A DNA stretch of 50,676 nt from Chara braunii (GCA_003427395.1 BFEA01000016.1:4048513-4099188), one strand, 5' to 3'; counted from the stretch's first letter, positions 38,009 through 50,676 are shown. Notes: generated by a model from the sequence alone, not told the origin. Translations and numbers: made by a program.

Positions 38009-40498
38009 TGTGACGCCCAACCTCACGCCCAACACGACTTCCTGATCGGAGTGGGTGTGGGCCTAGAAGTGCGAAAAGGGGTGTGCCAAGGATTTTTGGC
38101 AAATTGGGGGTGGAGTCCCAGGTCCGAACTGAGATCTCCTGTGGCAAGGTTCCAAGGGCATAGGTACAATGAGGCTAAGGGACGGGTTACTTTCGGTCTG
38201 ATGGCGGTCGAGGTCGTGCAGCATAAGGCAGATGGCATGCTTGGTGCATTTTGGGCCGTCCGATCCGCCCGTCCCAGTGACGGTGGTTTGGGAGAGGTCC
38301 GTTCGAGAGGGTCGTGATTTCTATGGGTCGGACCTCCTGGTGTGGACACGTGGCGGTTGACGTCCCACGTTATGGTTAGGCTCCGTAATTCCAGAGGCTC
38401 GGCGGTTGCCGCATCGTCTGCAATTTCTGCACGGCGTGTGGGGCCAATACGGGGCTATGGAATTCCACGGTACCACCGTGAGTTGGTGGTATGGGAGGAG
38501 GAGATGAAAGGGAGGGAATTTGGTAGCGATAACGACGAAGCCGGGGGATATGAAATATTGCGTGTTATAAGTAGTCGGGTAGTCGGGGCCCCTCGGGTCG
38601 TTGGTTACAGCGCAGTGAAAGTCCCTGGCACAAAGTCGGTCGTTCTCGGTTAGACAGGGGAATTCTGGATTTCTCAAATTCCCCCGCAGCCTAAGTTGTT
38701 CTCCCTCCCAGTATTCTCGGTACTCTGGGTCCCGCAATTTCTCCCGGTCCACGATGTACGACATTTTATCATTCCGGCGGATTGCTAGCTGCAACGTATT
38801 GGGAACCCTCCGCACGCATCTGATCGTGCTTAGATTGACAAGGGGATTTCCGGGTATGGTGGCGGAAATTCCAACCGGCTCGAATTCTAGCAAAAGAGAA
38901 AATTTCGCACTTATCCCGATATTGGAGGTGCCAAGTTCATCAGTGATCGCGAATCGCCCGCGTGTGGACACATGTAGGCCGCGTTGATCAGATCGCGCTT
39001 ACACGTGCGCACACAAGGTGTTTGATCATACACGGGCCTGTTGGTTGATTTTCGTGCAAAAGTGAGGTTTCAGCCCTACATGCAAAATCGCCACGTGGCA
39101 TAGATAATCACCCAATCATCTAATCGTTCAGTGATCCCGCAACCCAACAACATCTCTGGATTATGCAGAGTGACATCGCATCATGGCCTACTCATACATC
39201 AGACACTGTAAGGACGAGCAAAAAGAAAACAACGAGTAATATAATTCAACCATCCCTTGGGCAGAATCCATCCATTCATCGTACACAAAAAGAAAAAAGA
39301 GAAAGGATCGAGAAACGACAAAAGTGTCAGTCAAAGGCGAAAGCCAGAAAGGATGTCGAATCGAAAAATAAGGGCGGATCGCCCGAAGCCGAGATCAAAA
39401 CTTATATACAAGATTGAGAAAGACAAAGAAAATTGCAATCCCACGTCCATCCATCTCAACTCTCTCCCTCGCTTTCTCTCTCTCCGATGTGGACAGTCCG
39501 TCATTACGCACCAACCCACGAAGTTGTCACCCCGCTTAGTCCTCCTGTGCCCGTCAGGTTCGCCCGCGTGCCACAGTTCGTCGTAGCCTACGCGTCAACC
39601 CCGCACATTCGGCACCAGCCCGTCGGGTCGCCCAACTTGCACTTCAACTCACCTCTTACTTCGCTCGTGAGCCGACCCTCATTGATCGCGCTACCCCGAG
39701 CTTCCAACAACTGTTTAAGAGCGTTATCTAATCGCGCAACCGAAATTTATAGCGTGCATGCATGCGCGAAGAACACGAAATTGCAAGGACCTAGAAAGAG
39801 AGAAGGGGAGGGAGTGCCTACGTTTTGCATGGCCAGATCGCGGTGTGGGGGACGTAGCCACTCTCCACGCATCGATCCGATCATGCAGCCCGCGAGCCAA
39901 CTAGACAGCAAGGAAGAGAGAGGGCAGGAAAGACGAAGCTCAAGAAGAAAGATTCAGTTACAAGGGCGTCCTGCCCAAAATTACAGTTACACGCAAGATT
40001 AAGGGTGCCGACTAATCAGAGCTCCGTTGCAGCCGCAAAAAGAAACGCGCGAGCGAAAAGCACCGCGCGGCAAAAGAAATTCCGAATTCCTAAGTTCCCA
40101 AATTCCTATTTAATGCAAAAATGCAAAAAGAAGTCCGAAATTCCGAGAGCCATCGAGGGCTCGACAAGATTCGAAAAAGAAATTCAAAAAGAAAGAAGCA
40201 AAACTCCCGCGCGATCACCGCGCTGAAAACCCGACAGCAGAACAAGAAAGAAGCGACGTCAACCATTATTAATCGCGCCTCCGTCGGCGCGCCAACCACT
40301 CAATCGACCATCCCGGGACTTGCCCAGCCCTGGCCCCAGCCATCCGAAAGAAGCGATGTAAAAAGAAGAACAAACAAGAACACCGATGCAATTTTCCCGT
40401 TGGATCCCATCTCCCATAATTGGCCCAACTTTCCCAGCTTAGGACCCCTCATTGTCATCGCGCAGAAAATCGAGCGGAACAGGAATTGGTTCGTCATA
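38009..40498 (-). repeat. 3' LTR (~2.5 kb)
   Basis: Aligns with 48932-50374 except for a ~1.07 kb segment (~38778-39843) absent from the other copy. Confidence 0.88.
38321..38971 (-). CDS. Hypothetical 216-aa ORF inside the 3' LTR
   Basis: Open frame; homologous text at 49236-49752 (frameshifted) in the 5' LTR; HTPCRNCRRC motif. Confidence 0.35.
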   Translation of the reverse strand: MSTRGRFAITDELGTSNIGISAKFSLLLEFEPVGISATIPGNPLVNLSTIRCVRRVPNTLQLAIRRNDKMSYIVDREKLRDPEYREYWEGEQLRLRGNLRNPEFPCLTENDRLCARDFHCAVTNDPRGPDYPTTYNTQYFISPGFVVIATKFPPFHLLLPYHQLTVVPWNSIAPYWPHTPCRNCRRCGNRRASGITEPNHNVGRQPPRVHTRRSDP

Positions 40499-41218: not shown

Positions 41219-42720
41219 TCAAGGGGACGACGTGATAACGATCGAGGACGAAGCCCGATGCCCCGCATCGGTACGTGTGTGAACTGGGGGACGGGTGGAG
41301 GGGGAGGGGGATCGGCTTCGTCGTCTCTGTGTCGGTGCGGTCGAAGTCTCAGCAGCAGGGTCCCCACCGTTGATCCTGGGTGGCTCGGGATCTTTGGTCG
41401 GATCGTCTGGGATTGGTAGATCCGCGCCGCTCGCATACTCCAGCGGCTGCTTCCCGACCGCGATTTCTTCTCTCCGCCGCGCTACCACCTCGGGATCTTC
41501 TTCCTGGACCTCCGCGCGGTCCACCTCCTCGCCCATACTCTCCCACTCAGATCCTTCCTCTTCTTCTTCTCCGCTCGGCTCCTCTTCGCTGTGCTCGCTA
41601 TAACTCCCTTCCTCCGAGGTTTCTTCCTCCTCGTCCTCTTCTTCCTCCTCCTCTACCGCTATCGCTTCGTCTTCCGACATCGCCCGGGGCTGGAAGAAGA
41701 GGATGTCGATTATCCCCCGGGGATTCAGGTATTCTAATCGCGACGGATGGCTGCCACCTCCTCCCCGCTCCTCCAAGCAGGCTGACCACTGCAGATACGG
41801 TGTCAACCTTCGCGGGAGGACGTGCGGCACCGGGCTTTCGTCGCACTACGATATGATGTCGAGGGGGAGATCGTCGATTAGCTGCACGAAGGGGACCGAG
41901 AGCTCCCACACAATCAACTGCCGGTGGTCGGGTTCCACTGCTCCGAAAACGAACCCGAGGAGATCCCCTTCCACCTCCGTTCTCCAGGCCTGGATGATTA
42001 GCAGCTCCACACTCTCCCTCGCGGCGCGATACCCACTATCTCGTGTCCACGTCAGCTCCACTTCGACCAGGCACAGAGAGAGAGTGAGGTACCGCTCGCA
42101 CCACACCTCCCGATGTCTCGGCTCGATGAGAGGAACGACGATTGGCTGGATACAGAGAGAAAGTCGGGGATGGAGAGCAAATTGCCAGAAAGTGGGGAAG
42201 AGAGAGGGGAAGGCAAAGGTTGAGAACTGAAACGGGTTCATTGGGGGCGCAGAAAAGAGACAAGCTCTAGGAGTGTTACCGCCGGCTCATGTCGGGACGT
42301 GCGGAGCCCGCCGACGTCGATGCTGTTGGTGATGACGAGGTTGTCGTCGTGCCGCGCAAGCCACCGGCTTTACACCTGCGCTAACTGTTCACCCCACTCC
42401 CTTAGCGAGGTCCGGATGACCGTATGCCTTGTAGGATCCACTGTGCTGATGTCCCCGCTGAAGACGACGATGGTAGACACGTGGCTGATCCCTGGCGCCG
42501 AAAGCCGTCGATAAGCCGATGCCTCGACCAACACGAGTGTCTGGCTATGGGCCGCAAAACGAAACTCTGCCGCTGCGTACACCTCAGTGGTGCTGAAGAA
42601 CTGCACAAATCGGAGAAGATCCGGACTGATCCGTGGATGATGGACTTGGGTGATCGCCGAAATATCGCCACGTGGTGCCAACATGTGCTCGCCAAGAACC
42701 TGCTCGGTGGAAAAACTCAT
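41219..42720 (-). pseudogene. Additional ORF downstream of integrase, broken, with an acidic tract
   Basis: Consecutive sense ORFs 42370-42720, 41846-42241 and 41219-41830; EEEEEEDEEEETSEEGSYSEHSEEE. Confidence 0.6.
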
Positions 42721-42859
42721 GGCGATGGCGGCGGGGACCGAATACCAGAAGGAGAAGGGGACAGAGAAAGAGAAGAGGGCGATAAGCAGGCGTCGTCCTA
42801 TTCCGTACTAGAGGAGGGGGCGGACGAAGGTGGAGATGGAGAGGAAGGGAGAGGCCGCA

Positions 42860-44200
42860 GATAGGACACGTGGCGAGTGATCGGGCGGGCAGATTGGCTG
42901 TCGGAGACCTCAGGCACGAGCCGCACCGTGTTCACTCTGTTCGGACCGAGCTCGACTACGTGAAATCGCCCGAAGAATTGTGGCGCTAGCTTACCCTAGC
43001 GAGCACATTTCCTCACCTGCACGATGTCCCCTAACTTATACTGGGGTCGTGGTCCCGCATTCCCATTTCGGGCCTCGTAGCTACGGACCTGTCAGCCTTG
43101 GGCCAACTCAGTCATTCGTTGACGTTTTCGGGCTAATCGGGGAAGGGACCGCTCCATCAGCTCTAGGTGTCGCTTGGCCTTGTCCAGAACCGTGGCCCTC
43201 GTGGGCCGTCGGTTCAACGAAGATTCGTCTGGGAGGCTCGGTATCGAAACACAAGCCACACTATTGGTCTGTAATTGAAAGGGGCTCAGGCCCGTCGATT
43301 CGTGGGGCGTTCCTCGATGCACCGCCAGGATGTGATCCACGATATCTTGCCAGGGTCTCGGATCCCGTGCCGTAATGTTTCGTCGCAGTGCAGTCTTAAT
43401 CACCCTATTTGCGTTCTCTACCAGCCCATTAGACTGTGACATGTGGGGTGCAGTATTCCGAATGGCGACACCGTGTATGATCAGGTTCCTCAAAACTTCC
43501 CCTCTGAATTCCGCCCCATTATCGGTCAGGATCTCCTCTGTGTCCTGATGCATTCCGAGAAAACAGTTGACGTATCGCGCGATTTCAGCCGCCTGTCGCG
43601 TACGACACGGATATGCCTCGATCCATTTCGAGAAGTGGTCTACACATACCAATAGGATTGAATACTCACAGCTATTAGGTCCAGGGGGCACCACAATATC
43701 GGTAGTATCCATACTAACCCTTTGAAAGGGCCTTTCAACCATCGTCGGCACTATCGATCTCGGCGGCTTAATCGGCGCCTTGTCAGCAGCGCAGACCTGA
43801 CAATTCTGGACGATGAATTTAACATCGTCACGAATATTGGACCAATACCACTCATTTTTGTCGATTGCCGCCTCCGTAATTCAGACGACAAAATGGGCTG
43901 CAGTTTCCTCATGCGCCGTCTTAACCCAGTCATACCTCATGAATGGGTGCGACACTACCATCCAAATCCCACTACCATCCGTCTTCCGTTTTTCTAACCC
44001 ACCCTCGTTCCAGCGATAGTCCCGAGCCCTTTCATTGGCCCTCCTCCGGTCCTCCTTAGTGAAGTCCTGGAGGGGGTTACCTACCAAGGTGGCGATTAAA
44101 GCAATATCCGTCCATACCTCGGCCCTTCTAAATTTTCGGGTCTTTTCTAACCCTTCTGACGTGGCGTCGAGAAATCGAGCCTCGATCGGGATCTTATCGA
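42860..44200 (-). pseudogene. Gypsy integrase (HHCC, DDE core, GPY/F module)
   Basis: AHEETAAHF...YWSNIRDDV..CQVC; RPFQRVSMD; LTDNGAEF; SNGLVENAN; KLAPQFFGRFHV. Confidence 0.93.
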
Positions 44201-44201
44201 C

Positions 44202-44370
44202 CCGACACAAGGGGCACAACCAAGGTTTGTTGCCATTTCGATACTGAATGCAAGAGCCATAGACTCTCGTGACACACTGCCGACAGTCTACCCATTCGAC
44301 ATAACCTTCCCCACTAGGATGCATGGGGACAGAGTAAACGCGTGAAATCGCTTCACAAAAATGACAAAAT
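44202..44370 (-). other. PHD-type zinc finger domain between RNase H and integrase
   Basis: C-HF-C-x23(WVD)-C-RQ-C-VTRV-Y-GS-C-x11(WL)-C-PL-C; C4HC3 spacing, with the His position read as TAT (Tyr). Confidence 0.82.
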
Positions 44371-44436
44371 TTATCTGGTAGAGAAAGAAGGGATGAGGAC
44401 GAGAGGGGAGAGAGAGGAGTTGCAAGATTACCTCCG

Positions 44437-46006
44437 TCACCCACTGCCACGTGCCTGCTTCTTGCCACGTGGGAGAACTGCCACTTGTCCGTATTTGGGT
44501 CCGTTCGTTGATTCCGGTTCCTCCCACGGGATGATTTCTTCGCCTTTAGGTACCTTAGCCGGTCGATGCAGACGTGTCAATCCGTCCGCGTTTCCCTGCC
44601 TCTCCGTCTTCCGATGGATGATATCGAAGTCGTACTCCTGCAGGCGCACTGCCCAACGCCCAATCATACCTGTGTAGTTAGTGAGCCTCTTCAGAGCCAG
44701 CAGCGGCTCGTGATCAGTCACCAGAAGAAACTTATGTCCATAAAGATACGGATGGAAGTGTTGGATTCCCCAGACTACCGCATAGCATGCGCCCTGCGGG
44801 GCCGAATCATTCTTTCGTTCGTCTGGCACCGTTCAAGATGCGTACTCGATGACGTGTTCACGACCGTCGTTCCCCTTCTGCGCTAGGATAGCGGAAATCG
44901 CCTCCGGTTGCCAGTCCGTAATGAGAATGAACTGCTTCGTAGGGTCCGGCCGGATCAAAATAGGTGTTGTAGCCAGGGCATCCTTGAGGGTGGTGAAGGC
45001 CTGTTCGCACTCGACGTCCCAACTGAGAGGCTGGTCCTTTCGTAACAAGTTCGTTAGGGGCCGCGCAATCGCGGCGAACCCCTTGATGAATCGACAATAG
45101 TATGACATCAGTCCCAGAAAAGCTCAAACCTGCGTCAATGACGTGGGAACAGGGGTGTCTTTCACTGCCACGACCTTCCTCGAATCCGGCCGCAGTCCTC
45201 CCCGTATCACCACGTAGCCCAGGAACGAGATCTCCGAGAGAAAAAATTCGCTCTTCTCTAACGCGACCTTGAACCCAGTGTCTCTCAGAGCTCCCATCGT
45301 CCACTCAATGTGTTGCGCGTGTCCGTGATAGGTCTCTGAGTAGACCAGAATGTTGTCCATGTACACGATGACGCAGAAGTTGATCATCCCCTGAGTTAGC
45401 CGCGTCTTGTTGACGAAGTTCTGGAAGGTCACATTCATAGCCAGTTGAAACGTAGCAGGCGCATTACAAATCCCGATCGGGCACCGGACCCACTGCCACG
45501 TGCCTTCAAATAGCACGAAGGCCATTTTCGGTCGATCCTCCTTCTTGACCAGGATATGATGAAAGTCGTGATGAATATCAAATTTACTAAAATAAATAGC
45601 ACACCCAATCGCATCCAGCAAATCATCAATCCGGGGAAGGGGATACACATCTTTGATCGTGATATCATTTAGTTTGCGATAATCGATGCAGATGCAAATC
45701 GACCCATTCTTCTTCGGTACTAACAGTACCGGGAATGACCATGGCCCAGTAGCGGGCTCGATTCATCCGTTAGCTTCGAACTCTCGAATCCGTTGGAGGG
45801 TTGTCTTCCGTTCCACCAGGGAATTTTGTGTAGGGTTTACAGTGGATGGGAGGATGGTTTCCGATTTGAATTTCGTGTTGTATGACTAACGACAGTCCAA
45901 TATCTGTTTTAGTCACGCTAATCGCTCCCTGATATTCTTTTAGAATGTCCGTGATTAGGTGATGGATCTCATCAAGTACGTAGTGGGGTACGTGCAACTC
46001 ATACAA
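44437..46006 (-). pseudogene. pol: Gypsy reverse transcriptase and RNase H
   Basis: YPLPRIDDLLD, CPIGICNAPATFQ, VYMDNIL (YxDD mutated), YYCRFIKGFA, LITDWQ, LVTDHEPL, RWAVRLQEYDF, NADGLTR. Confidence 0.95.
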
Positions 46007-46632: not shown

Positions 46633-47676
46633 TCACACAAAGAGAGTTCCCGCCATTATCTGAGAAACCCGCGGAGCTATGCTAGCGGTAGTTCGAAGGG
46701 TTAGTCTCATAGGTATGCCGTAGGGTTTTCCTCCCGTATTCCGGAGGATGATCGATCGTTTCTCGAAATCCAGATTGGCTCGCAAGGCCATCAAAGCGGG
46801 CAGGCCCAAGAGAACCTCGTAAGTGCTCACGTCTAATACTACGACATCTCCCAGGGCATGCACCTTTCCTAATCGAAAAGTGACGTTGTTCATTCGCCCT
46901 ACTGTCTTACTCTTCTCTTCATCTGCCGAAACGAGCTGATCTTTTTTCGTAAGCATGATCAGATCTTTCCTTCTTTCGGCCCGTTCGACTACCCGTAGTG
47001 AGATGGTTAGGACAGCTGCTCCGGAATCGATGATGGCATTGTACGGGACTCCCCATACTTCGATGTCACATTCTGCGGATTTCCACGGAATCGCCTTAAT
47101 CCGCAGGAAGTGATCATCTTTCAGGATCAATCCTAAGCGTATCGGGTCTGACGTGTCAGTGACGGGTTCGTCTTGTGCTGGACTCTTTCCTTTCGTATTT
47201 GTTGTTCGAGCAAGGGCGAATCGCTTTCGATTCGCCTTGCAGTGTTGCAGCATGCGTTCGTTGGCTTGTTCTGATATCGACAATAGATGACCGATTGGGA
47301 GAGGGATTCGATGATCTAATGCCCGAACAATGTTCAAGACATCGATTTCCCCGGTGACAAAAGTGAGTCCTCCCGTCTCCATTTCCCATGGAGACGGTCG
47401 CCACTCCGCCACTTCCCTCTGTTCGGGTGCGGGCCTAATCGTTCCGATCATTCCCAGAACTGGGTAGCCAAGGTTTACGTACTGGTCCAATGGGATAAGT
47501 TCAGCGGCTTCTTCCGTTGTAGCCAACGTGCATCCGCCTCCTTCCATCTCTTCCATTAGCGCCCCTACTCGCCCCGGCCCGTTAGCAATCGGGGTTGCTG
47601 CTACCGGTGCGGCCCCGACTCGTGGTTGCGGGGTCGATGGGGGCAATCTCGGGCTATGTGCCCTTGTTGATGGCAC
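46633..47676 (-). pseudogene. Gypsy aspartic protease region
   Basis: AIIDSGAAVLTIS and EVLLGLPAL. Confidence 0.9.
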
Positions 47677-48774
47677 GTGTCACAAACGTTCAGGTTACCA
47701 ACGGCTCCTCCGAGAGCGGGTGCTGGGGCCGACCCTTGTTGCATCGGGGCGGCTCGTATCGCTATCGGTCGCATTAATCGCATCATTGCCTCTATTCGGG
47801 CATTGTGCTCCCGCTGTTCTTTCTTGCTTTCCTGGATCAGATTGACTAGTGTCTTGGTCAGTTCTAATAAGGCGGNCATCATTGCCTCTATTCGGGCATT
47901 GTGCTCCCGCTGTTCTTTCTTGCTTTCCTGGATCAGATTGACTAGTGTCTTGGTCAGTTCTAATAAGGCGGTTGATTCATTCCATCGTACGGGGTTTTTC
48001 CGCCGGTGGTGGGGGCGCGGTCATCACAGGGATCGGCATGCTCGGGATCATACTCGGGGCTGGTCGTTTGGGGGTGATTTCTTCCAGATAGGTGACCACG
48101 CCAGACACAAACCCCATATTTTCAAACTTATTTTGTAATGCCGCCAACTCAGCTTTGACTCTCGCCAGTTCGGACGAGTCTCCTTCCCTGGGATAATCCT
48201 CTCCCTCCAGGAAACTCAAGGCGAACTTTCGTTCCATTTTTTCGGCGGCCGCCATGATTTGTTGCAGCGTGTGATTGATGGGGGAGAATTGTTTCCGCAA
48301 TTTCGCCCTCATTGCTCAGCTGCGAAGTCCATCAATAAATAGGTCCCTTCCTACCTGTTCGCCTCGCTCAGTCTTTACAAACATTCGATAAAATCGATTT
48401 CGGTACTCGGTGACGGACTCGAGGGGGTTTTGAACTCGATCTTTAATCATGAAAAGGGCCTGTTCAGGGTGGATGTAATCGAATTGGTTCAGAAAATCTC
48501 GCTCGAATGTCGGAAGATCAACCCATACATAGGTGCTAAACCAATGATGAGCGTCCCCCCCCAACCGAGCGGGAATGTTTATTTGTGCTTCGTTGTCTTC
48601 GTACTGCTGAGCTCGGAGCGTAGCCAGCCATGATCCAACAAGGTGGTGAGCAGGATCGAACAGGTAAAGATCAGGTCGAGTCACAGGTACCCGCGCTCGA
48701 GGTATGGGTTGATTAGGATTTAGCTGTTGATTGGGGTTTTGTTGTGGGTTCGGGTTCTGTTGATTGGCGTTCAT
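47601..48774 (-). pseudogene. gag: Gypsy gag (capsid and CCHC knuckle)
   Basis: LGGDAHHWF...FERDFLNQF...QNPLESVTEYRNRF...FIDGL; CDTCHQQGHIARDC. Confidence 0.9.
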
Positions 48775-48920
48775 GTTGGTTGCCCGTCGAGCCGAAGACC
48801 GGCTTCTTGTAACGACGGGGTCGCGTCGATGCGCGTTCCGGGGTCGAGGTCGCCCCCTGTTAGCCAGATCGCTTCGATCTCAGTTATCGTCCTACGAATC
48901 CTATAATCCTGCCACGTGTC

Positions 48921-48933
48921 GGTTCCGATATCA
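48921..48933 (-). promoter_or_regulatory. Degenerate initiator tRNA-Met primer binding site
   Basis: TGATATCGGAACC versus canonical TGGTATCAGAGCC (3 mismatches), immediately after the 5' LTR. Confidence 0.55.
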
Positions 48934-50374
48934 ACCTCATGCCCGGCGCGACTTCCTGATCGGAGTGGGATGTGGGCCTGGAAGTGCGAAAAGGGGTGTG
49001 CCAAGGATTTTTGGGAAATTGGGGGTGGAGTCCCAGGTCAGAACTGAGATCTCCTGTGGCAAGGATCCAGGGGCATAGGTGCAATGAGGCTAAGGGACGG
49101 GTTACTTTCGGTCTGATGGTGCTCGAGGTCGTGCAGCATAAGGCAGATGGCATGCGCGGTGCATCTTGGGTCGTCCGATCCGCCTATTCCAGTGACGGCG
49201 GTTCGGGAGAGGTTCGTTTGTGAGGGTCGCGATTTCTATGGGTCGGACCTCCGGGTGTGGACACGTGGCGGTTGATGTCGCGCGTTATGGTTAGGCTCCG
49301 TAATTCCTGAGACTCGGCGGTTGCCGCACCGTCTGCAATTTATGCACGGTGTGTGGGGCCAATACGGGGCTATTCCTTGGTACCACCGTGAGTTGGTGGT
49401 ATGGGAGGAGGAGATGGAAGGGAGGGAAATTGGTAGCGATAATGACGAAGCCGGAGGATATGAAATATTGCGTGTTATTAGTAGTCGGGAAGTCGGGGCC
49501 CCTCGGGTCATTGGTTACGGCGCGGTGAAAGTCCCTGGCACACAGTCGGTCGTTCTGGGTTAGACAGGGGAATTCCGGATTTCTCAAATCCCCCCGCAGC
49601 CTAAGCTGTTCTCCCTCCCAGTATTCTCGGTACTTTGGGTCCTGCAATTTCTCCCGGTCCGCGATGTACGACATCTGGTCATTCCGGTGTGGGGGGCATA
49701 GCCACTCTCCACGCATCGATCCGATCATGCAGCCCGCGAGCCAACTAGACACAACAAGGAAGAGAGAGGGCGGGAAAGACGAAGCTCAAGAAGAAAGATA
49801 CAGTTACAAGGGCGCCCTGCCCAAAATTACAGTTACTCACAAGATTAAGGGCGCCGACTAATCAGAGCTCCGTTGCAGCCGCAAAAAGAAACGCGCGAGC
49901 AAAAAGCACCGCGCGGCCAAAGAAATTCCGAATTCCTAAATTCCCAAATTCCTATTTAACACAAAAATGCAAAAAGAGCTTTAATAAAGCACAAATCCTG
50001 AAAAGAAAGTCCAAAATTCCGAGAGCCATCGAGGGCCCGACAAGATTCGAAAAAAAAAATAAAAAAGAAAGAAGCAAAACTCCCGCGCGATCACCGCGCC
50101 GAAAACCCGACAACAGAACAAGAAAGAAGCGACGTCAACCATTGTTAATCGCGCCTCCGTCGGCGCACCAGCCACTCAATCGACCATCCCGGGACTTGCC
50201 CAGCCCTGGCCCCAGCCATCCGAAAGAAGCGACATAAAAAGAAGAACAAACAAGGACACCGATGCAATTTTCCCGTTGGATCCCATCTCCAATAATTGGC
50301 CCAACCTTACCAGCTTAGGACCCCTCATTGTCATCGCGTAGAAAATCACGCGGAACAGGAATTGGTTCGTCACA
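48932..50374 (-). repeat. 5' LTR (~1.44 kb, shorter copy)
   Basis: Direct repeat of 38017-40498; begins TGTGACGAACC on minus. Confidence 0.88.
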
Positions 50375-50419
50375 GTGCCACCGACTTTCGTCCTTCCTGG
50401 AATGGGTGTGGGCCTGCTG

Positions 50420-50420
<1 letters not shown>

Positions 50421-50467
<47 letters not shown>
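50421..50467. repeat. (TG)n microsatellite
   Basis: Direct inspection. Confidence 0.97.
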
Positions 50468-50468
<1 letters not shown>

Positions 50469-50651
50469 GTCCGGCTCATATGATAGGTGCAGCCAAGCGG
50501 CCACCTTACACACCAGGCTAGTGCTCGGGAAATTCTTCCCCAAGGAGTGCAGGGTTTCCCTTCCTTTTACCATGAATACCGCTGAGCCTCTTTTCCAATG
50601 CACCTTTTTGCTTGGCCCATCGGTACTGGCGGTCTAACCACGAGACCATAC

Positions 50652-50676
50652 TTTTTTTTTTTTTTTTAACCCAGGG
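50652..50676 (-). mobile_element. Probable poly(A) tail of another retroposon running out of the window
   Basis: T16 followed by aacccaggg, similar to the LINE-B tail junction (Tn-aacacccc). Confidence 0.45.

Follow-up and report, generated by a model that had tools for sequence, protein, structure and literature searches.

The analyzed stretch of DNA, referred to here as the window, comprises 50,676 nucleotides of the Chara braunii genome (GCA_003427395.1 BFEA01000016.1:4048513-4099188). Between approximately 38.0 and 50.4 kb, its minus strand holds a degraded copy of a Ty3/Gypsy LTR retrotransposon of roughly 12.5 kb, the translation of which shows several stops and frame changes (Table 1). 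When positions 48501 to 50676 were compared with the whole window by blastn, a pair of direct LTRs was found, ~90 to 92% identical and enclosing gag and a pol region with Pfam matches in the order protease (PR), reverse transcriptase (RT), RNase H (RH), and integrase (IN), the arrangement of Ty3/Gypsy elements (Metaviridae). The LTRs align in two blocks (48932-49687 with 38018-38777, 91.9% identity; 49685-50372 with 39841-40496, 89.7% identity), between which the start-to-start spacing shifts from ~10,910 to ~9,876. The stretch present in the 3' LTR only would correspond either to a later insertion into that LTR or to a deletion from the 5' LTR. Within gag, at 47780 to 47976, ~32 codons are duplicated exactly on either side of a lone N at 47876, which looks like an artifact of an assembly join rather than biology.

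The RNase H frame is interrupted by one stop (44835-44833) and closes at a TGA at 44439-44437. Gypsy integrases carry an N-terminal extension before their HHCC finger, and the linker preceding the integrase of the window (first HHCC His codon at 43949) was aligned by hhalign with the region that precedes the integrase in other Gypsy polyproteins. Beyond the catalytic core, the GPY/F segment is conserved in five of the related loci described below (L002, L005, L006, L008, and L009). It is followed by ~1.6 kb, highly acidic in part, in which no Pfam family was matched (41222-42807) and for which tblastn revealed identities of 48 to 70% (42373-42807) and 35 to 55% (41222-41845) in L003, L006, L008, and L009; this region may represent an extra ORF of the window family.

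The feature of main interest, a cysteine-rich segment of 56 residues, lies between RNase H and the HHCC finger of the integrase, ~85 residues upstream of the latter, with its first codon at 44369-44367 and its last at 44204-44202. A previous sequence-only reading of the window had proposed that this segment has the C4HC3 ligand spacing of a PHD finger, and when 44468-43881 was translated on the minus strand, the peptide that it quoted was recovered exactly, at 44369-44202. The interval given for it, 44202-44370, does contain the segment but is one base too long and had been reported without a strand. The spacing in the window is C-x2-C-x23-C-x2-C-x4-[Y]-x2-C-x11-C-x2-C, with a tyrosine at the position of the histidine ligand. 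The finger is indeed in the same frame as the integrase, as had been claimed; the sole interruption is a TGA (43883-43881) that splits the HHCC finger between its His and its Cys pair. Relative to the RNase H frame, the finger is offset by +1.

Table 1. Features of the Ty3/Gypsy copy in the window and ORF junctions at related loci (window positions unless a locus is named)
Feature	Position	Strand	Evidence or remark
5' LTR	48932..50372 (approximate ends)	-	blastn blocks versus 3' LTR
gag, capsid-like part	48319..48879	-	Pfam Retrotrans_gag, 27.0 bits, E 5.3e-6
gag CCHC zinc knuckle, frame differs from capsid part	47643..47684	-	C-x2-C-x4-H-x4-C in translation
Aspartic protease region	46636..47679	-	Pfam RVP_2, 23.0 bits (cut-off 20.3); Asp_protease_2, 25.6 bits
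Reverse transcriptase	45127..45762	-	Pfam RVT_1, 101.3 bits, E 8e-29
RNase H and tail	44440..45123	-	Pfam RT_RNaseH_2, 61.1 bits; RT_RNaseH, 55.0 bits
~13 extra bases versus L008	44452..44464	-	Placement alignment dependent; short motif repeated there
Divergent PHD-type (C4HC3) zinc finger (putative), Tyr at His ligand	44202..44369	-	Translation, ligand conservation, hhalign
Ligands 1 and 2, Cys	44366-44364; 44357-44355	-	Translation
Trp of W-x2-C	44294-44292	-	Three residues before third Cys
Ligands 3 and 4, Cys	44285-44283; 44276-44274	-	Translation
His-position codon TAT (Tyr)	44261-44259	-	Translation; minority state in family
Cys after His position	44252-44250	-	Translation
Trp of W-x-C-x2-C	44222-44220	-	Two residues before seventh ligand
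Last two Cys	44216-44214; 44207-44205	-	Translation
Linker/integrase N-terminal extension, through both HHCC His	43884..44201	-	Open frame of the finger
In-frame TGA within HHCC	43881..43883	-	Minority state in family
Integrase, C-x2-C of HHCC (43802-43791) and DDE catalytic core	43095..43880	-	Pfam rve, 42.6 bits; Integrase_H2C2, 23.7 bits
Integrase C-terminal GPY/F (SH3-like) module	42801..42995	-	Weak Pfam SH3_Tf2-1 match, 12.7 bits
Post-integrase region, acidic stretch at 41845-41222	41222..42807	-	tblastn conservation among family copies
3' LTR	38018..40496	-	Same blastn; ~1.06 kb (about 38778-39840) missing from 5' LTR
RH-stop/PHD-integrase junctions, metagenomic	L001:2490-2580; L010:1790-1880		ORF reading
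RH-stop/PHD-integrase junctions, Chara family 2	L002:11381-11540; L004:9134-9290; L005:6985-7140		

Decay of the window copy and state of its family

When 1.84 billion representative proteins were scanned with HMMER, a 231-residue piece of the window copy yielded 15 matches, nearly all of them Chara braunii gene models (GCA_003427395.1), among which were all close relatives of the window element; another match, P0012, came from a JGI metagenome contig. Most of the Chara gene models leave out the finger in the manner of an intron, and ten loci (L001 to L010) were therefore read directly at the DNA level. Three lineages were found: the window family (L003, L006, L007, L008, and L009; protein identity of 67 to 88%), a second Chara family (L002, L004, and L005; 42% identity to the window over the piece), and a metagenomic lineage (L001 and L010, encoding P0012 and P0016; ~26 to 30% identity). 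A metagenome scan with the finger-to-HHCC alignment produced a single further locus, L007, a Chara-like copy. As for the gene models themselves, P0006, P0043, P0045, P0003, and P0004 (at L004, L008, L009, L005, and L002) turn the finger, or most of it, into an intron, and the model at L008 does so although the frame there is open throughout. Due to this annotation, PHD-bearing elements of this kind are under-counted in surveys of protein databases or Pfam matches.

The sister copy at L008 contains an uninterrupted frame of 944 codons (L008:5025-7856), which runs from RT through RH, the finger, and IN into GPY/F and encodes all seven Cys and the His; L009 and L007 retain all eight finger ligands as well. 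Both features that the sequence-only reading had asked of a family consensus, a restored His and a frame continuous with RH and IN, are thus present in a single copy, and the working form of the family would encode pol as one frame, PR-RT-RH-[zinc finger]-IN. To place the window copy among its relatives, contigs of a genomic run were positioned on 43500-45000 at ≥85% likeness, and three RNA runs were compared. At 44261, a plus-strand G instead of A (TAT>CAT, His) accounted for 561.1 of 586.3 genomic depth units from other copies (~96%) and for both of the two RNA reads, and His occupies the ligand position in L008, L009, L007, and L003. With His as the majority state of the family, the TAT codon represents a decayed CAT, one C>T change away, just as had been suggested. 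Similarly, A>G at plus-strand position 43883 (TGA>CGA, Arg) was seen in 2449 of 2749.3 genomic depth units (~89%) and in 18 of 20 RNA reads, and Arg replaces the stop in L003 and L008. The window copy is, in other words, alone or in a minority in having Tyr for His and a stop ahead of the integrase core.

The +1 offset between RNase H and the PHD-integrase part of the window copy results from the ~13 extra bases at 44452-44464, which adjoin a repeated CACGTGGCA motif. From the conserved YGQV codons to the first Cys of the finger, the window measures 124 nt, L008 (in frame) 111 nt, L003 and L006 131 nt, and L007 135 nt; the RH-to-finger linker is an indel hotspot in this family. Two other explanations of the offset were rejected. 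First, removal of a 70-nt GT...AG stretch that includes a pyrimidine tract would bring RH and the finger into one frame, but no splice joints around the junction were present in the three RNA runs, and L008 is in frame without splicing, which led us to drop the intron; loose read ends at 44456-44458 turned out to be merely diverged homologous sequence. Second, programmed +1 frameshifting had been suspected because the window, L001, L002, L004, and L005 all share a +1 offset, but it was discarded for the window family, whose sister copies have offsets of 0, +1, and +2, with an offset of 0 in the intact L008. RNA mapping to 43500-45000 stemmed from one of three oligo-dT runs (X6; 278 reads), in which the two strands were about equally represented and the depth profile mirrored that of the DNA run, which suggests that these reads represent genomic DNA carry-over or sample-specific bidirectional transcription.

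The window copy, then, is an ordinary decayed repeat copy, and its finger is dead: Tyr has taken the place of the His ligand, and the finger is cut off from RNase H by a 13-base insertion and from the integrase core by a stop. In so broken a copy, with Tyr for His, an offset RH frame, and a stop before IN, a series of Cys codons might be the chance product of a decayed frame, or else a functionless, copy-specific insertion. We attach practically no probability to that idea. The segment is by no means confined to this copy, as three lineages carry it, and all ligands are conserved among them: the second Chara family (42% identity) and P0012 and P0016 (~30% identity) retain each of the seven Cys, the His, and the two Trp. 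Moreover, L008 provides an intact long ORF through the finger, and the comparison of substitution rates that had been proposed as a check, applied to P0012 and P0016, gave a pN for the finger (0.24) far below pS (0.74), the synonymous sites between these two intact metagenomic copies being near saturation (pS about 0.7). Given a pN of 0.09 in the integrase core, these values show a finger that is constrained and yet changes faster than the enzyme.

Identity of the finger and its attachment to the integrase

The ligand order of the PHD family (PF00628), Cys4-His-Cys3 with PHD spacing, was found in L008, L009, L002, L004, P0012, and P0016, and W-x-C-x2-C is invariant in every aligned member. Comparison with PHD profiles, on the other hand, gave a divided answer. 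The Pfam PHD gathering threshold of 24 bits was reached by no Chara-type or metagenomic finger (10.0 to 10.7 bits for the window, 15.8 for L002, and 16.8 for L004), and the finger of P0012 matched only PHD_2 in Pfam, at 9.6 bits. In hhalign, however, Chara-type fingers aligned with canonical PHDs of transposons at 77% probability (E 2e-5), and when the alignment was extended through the linker to the two HHCC His, the probability with related Gypsy PHD modules rose to 97.1% (E 4.9e-11), with the ligand columns in register. Profile matches in the PDB were enriched for PHDs (PHF7, ZMYND11, BRD1, ING, and WSTF) but were not significant (E 0.02 to 0.04), and PHD proteins headed or recurred among these weak matches, among those in Pfam, and among the language-model neighbors of the finger.

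A different kind of zinc finger was considered as well: a RING variant, for which C4HC3 is likewise the ligand order, a DNA-binding finger like the 4xCXXC type of CDCA7/R1, or a plain treble clef, with a function other than histone reading, possibly DNA binding, recruitment of a ubiquitin ligase, or service as an extra multimerization or structural domain of the integrase. The best Pfam match of the window copy is in fact zf-4CXXC_R1 (PF10497; cut-off, 22.7 bits), at 22.9 bits for the domain alone and 21.2 bits for the 231-residue piece, and weak matches to FYVE_2, RING, zinc-ribbon, and C1 families were seen, while PHD never exceeded its threshold. Two AlphaFold2 models on shallow alignments (5 to 6 sequences) had pLDDT values of 53.5 and 54.9, and a Foldseek search of the PDB with the first of these low-confidence models gave no match with E ≤ 0.001. 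The zf-4CXXC_R1 score, though, drops to 12.2 bits in the intact finger of L002 and disappears in L004, L003, and P0012, and since the score did not persist across family members, a CDCA7/R1-type identity was set aside. The order C-x2-C ... C-x2-C-x4/5-H-x2-C ... W-x-C-x2-C is that of PHD fingers; RING-CH fingers differ from it by a C-x-C at ligands 3 and 4. In addition, the alignment puts the Chara-type finger in register with the canonical PHDs that occupy this position in related polyproteins. For these reasons, we regard another kind of finger as unlikely.

Some traits are nevertheless atypical for a PHD, namely, a first loop that spans 22 to 23 residues in Chara and a last loop of just 10 to 11 residues. 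No aromatic residue is present between the fourth Cys and the His of the Chara-type finger; PHD fingers of the H3K4me3 type (ING2 and BPTF) have a cage Trp there. On the basis of ligand order and profile alignments, we conclude that the segment is probably a C4HC3 cross-brace zinc finger of the PHD type that has diverged strongly.

That the finger belongs to the integrase, as the sequence-only reading had it, is indicated by the position of ORF boundaries in the two other lineages. In L001 and L010, heavily diverged copies in which both ORFs are intact, the RT-RH ORF ends in GAG-TGA, and the finger and integrase are encoded together by an ORF of 519 and 523 residues, respectively, in the +1 frame, with an AUG that begins 2 to 24 nt past the RT-RH stop; all five indels around this junction between L001 and L010 are multiples of three. 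In the second Chara family, a TGA is likewise followed by a +1 finger-integrase frame in all three copies (Table 1). The boundary separates the RH tail precisely from the finger, which supports assigning the latter to the N terminus of the integrase. Judging from these reading frames, the integrase in L001, L010, and the second Chara family may be a product of recoding, through programmed +1 frameshifting or through termination-reinitiation. We know of no described Ty3/Gypsy pol with a separate +1 PHD-integrase ORF.

Origin of the finger and related elements

Among the relatives retrieved by a search with the RT-to-IN stretch from a Chara polyprotein were P0104, P0109, P0141, P0142, and P0154 (ENA/Logan assemblies), which share with the Chara elements the domain order, the insertion point of the finger, the 97% hhalign match, and a common RT-RH group. 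Their fingers are canonical: P0104, P0109, P0141, and P0154 score 34 to 44 bits on Pfam PHD between RH and Integrase_H2C2, in contrast to the subthreshold Chara type, and P0142 has PF00628 among its precomputed domains along with a matching C4HC3 pattern between RH and IN. The last loop in these canonical-PHD Gypsy polyproteins has the usual 16 residues, as opposed to 10 to 11 in the Chara type, where it is the first loop that is long. Among the Gypsy polyproteins compared, the distance from the end of RH to HHCC was typically 75 to 125 residues without a finger and 187 to 307 residues with one. Two of the relatives encode a further domain between protease and RT (P0104:743-862 and P0141:363-468), matching Pfam Dam (N6-adenine DNA methyltransferase) at 30 to 42 bits.

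The sequence-only reading had proposed that the lineage of the window element captured a host PHD finger independently of other retrotransposons. Because of its divergence, the finger was indeed recovered among 1.84 billion representative proteins from only Chara and one metagenomic lineage, as such a capture might lead one to expect. However, when 76 rows were placed on an RT-RH tree (quick IQ-TREE search), the nine that have a PHD between RH and IN all fell into one 11-row group (SH-aLRT, 86%), and the presence of the finger required 2 changes on the tree, compared to a mean of 8.7 after shuffling, with none of 500 shuffles as low. The phylogeny of PHD-bearing and PHD-lacking elements, itself suggested as a check, thus speaks against independent capture, as do the shared insertion point, the similar distance to HHCC, and the ligand columns in register with the canonical PHDs, together with a published RH-PHD-INT element in Chlamydomonas (PMC9940879). 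The other two rows of the group, P0122 and P0131, are the nearest relatives without a PHD, and their position inside it would allow for more than one gain; their RH-IN linkers measure 168 to 187 residues and hold no Cys-rich segment in the stretch that was read, and a loss of the finger in P0122 and P0131 is plausible. All in all, we consider a separate capture in the Chara lineage very improbable. The sequence data favor, with moderate support, inheritance of the finger within a Gypsy clade that has canonical PHDs at the same place rather than its capture by the window element.

The same literature bears on a second claim, that of an undescribed system, which does not stand. Gypsy-7a_cRei of Chlamydomonas reinhardtii has already been drawn as GAG-PROT-RT-RH-PHD-INT, and the authors raised targeted insertion as a possibility, insertions into intergenic sequence having been 2.6 times more frequent than expectation (Craig et al. 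2022, Plant Cell, PMC9940879). Like the Chara element, it is a green-lineage Ty3/Gypsy element with a PHD between RH and INT; its host, though, is a chlorophyte, whereas Chara is a charophyte, and the annotation of its finger is that of a plant homeodomain finger, while that of Chara stays below the Pfam threshold, the two having been compared by description. PHD is a common accessory domain of Chlamydomonas transposons (PMC8557442), and fusions of PHD to transposons have been catalogued across eukaryotes by Grau-Bove et al., who found PHD and Chromo to be the readers most often fused to transposons and mentioned Chara for Chromo fusions only (10.1101/2021.11.30.470311). While we found no description of a PHD-bearing Gypsy family of Chara in the literature, the element is a further case of a design already published for green-algal Gypsy elements.

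PHD fingers also occur as accessory domains in other settings. The Gypsy element P0094 of Haematococcus lacustris is, like that of Chara, a green-algal, PHD-bearing one (Pfam PHD, 41 bits). Its PHD, however, is C-terminal, after IN-SH3-Chromo, rather than N-terminal of IN, and it falls elsewhere on the RT-RH tree, which shows that PHDs have joined Gypsy integrases in more than one position. P0094 also combines both types of reader, Chromo and PHD, on one integrase. REM1 is said to be a PHD-bearing transposon (Perez-Alegre et al., 2005, reportedly), and CR1 LINEs with a PHD are reported to have been described by Kapitonov and Jurka in 2003. Chlamys PLEs carry a PHD, too (PMC8557442). All three share the accessory domain with the Chara element but represent other element classes or, presumably, other finger positions.

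A possible chromatin tether in place of a chromodomain

As the sequence-only reading had noted, no chromodomain follows the GPY/F module. Pfam searches gave no Chromo match in the window pieces or in the open stretches from the integrase to the 3' LTR, nor in P0012 or P0016, and the frame of L008 ends ~20 residues past GPY/F. The window element therefore lacks the chromodomain at the integrase C terminus by which chromoviruses are recognized. We propose that, in this lineage, the PHD-type finger does the job of the missing chromodomain: it would stay on the integrase after protease cleavage and anchor the integration complex on chromatin, in all likelihood via the histone H3 tail. For the canonical fingers of the sister lineages, the nearest solved structures are the PHDs of KMT2D, CHD4, KDM5, KAT6A, BAZ2, PHF21A, UHRF1, and AIRE (E 1e-20 to 1e-12). 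Many PHDs of this group read the unmodified N terminus of H3. A parallel exists in the chromoviruses MAGGY and Tf1, in which, reportedly (Gao et al. 2008), a domain of the chromatin-reader type is likewise fused to the integrase and presumed to act as a chromatin tether. There, the reader is a C-terminal chromodomain, whereas in Chara it would be an N-terminal PHD-type finger; and while targeting has been shown for chromodomains, histone reading and integration targeting by the Chara finger are something we infer by analogy.

Overall, we think it likely that the window holds a decayed copy of a Chara Ty3/Gypsy element whose integrase carried, as an N-terminal appendage, a diverged PHD-type finger that was inherited within its clade and would act as a chromatin tether. 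The Chara-type finger has neither the usual last loop nor the cage Trp of H3K4me3 readers, and given this divergence from the canonical PHDs of the sister lineages, it may read a different chromatin feature. The fuller proposal, in which a recoded, separate +1 integrase ORF in two lineages goes together with a Chara-type finger that reads a different chromatin feature, is rather doubtful, and we put it forward only tentatively.

Through the present findings, the RH-PHD-IN design of Gypsy elements reaches beyond the chlorophytes to a streptophyte alga, a near relative of land plants. The findings also show that PHD-type fingers of transposons can diverge so far that domain databases no longer detect them. 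As the gene models of Chara mostly splice out the finger, surveys of reader/transposon fusions that depend on protein predictions and Pfam will overlook this abundant family. Many chromodomain-carrying Gypsy elements have been reported in Chara braunii (10.1101/2021.11.30.470311), and if the finger does steer integration, their coexistence with the family described here would provide a natural comparison of targeting within one genome. Should the Chara-type finger indeed read a chromatin feature different from that recognized by its canonical relatives, it would confer a new integration-targeting specificity.
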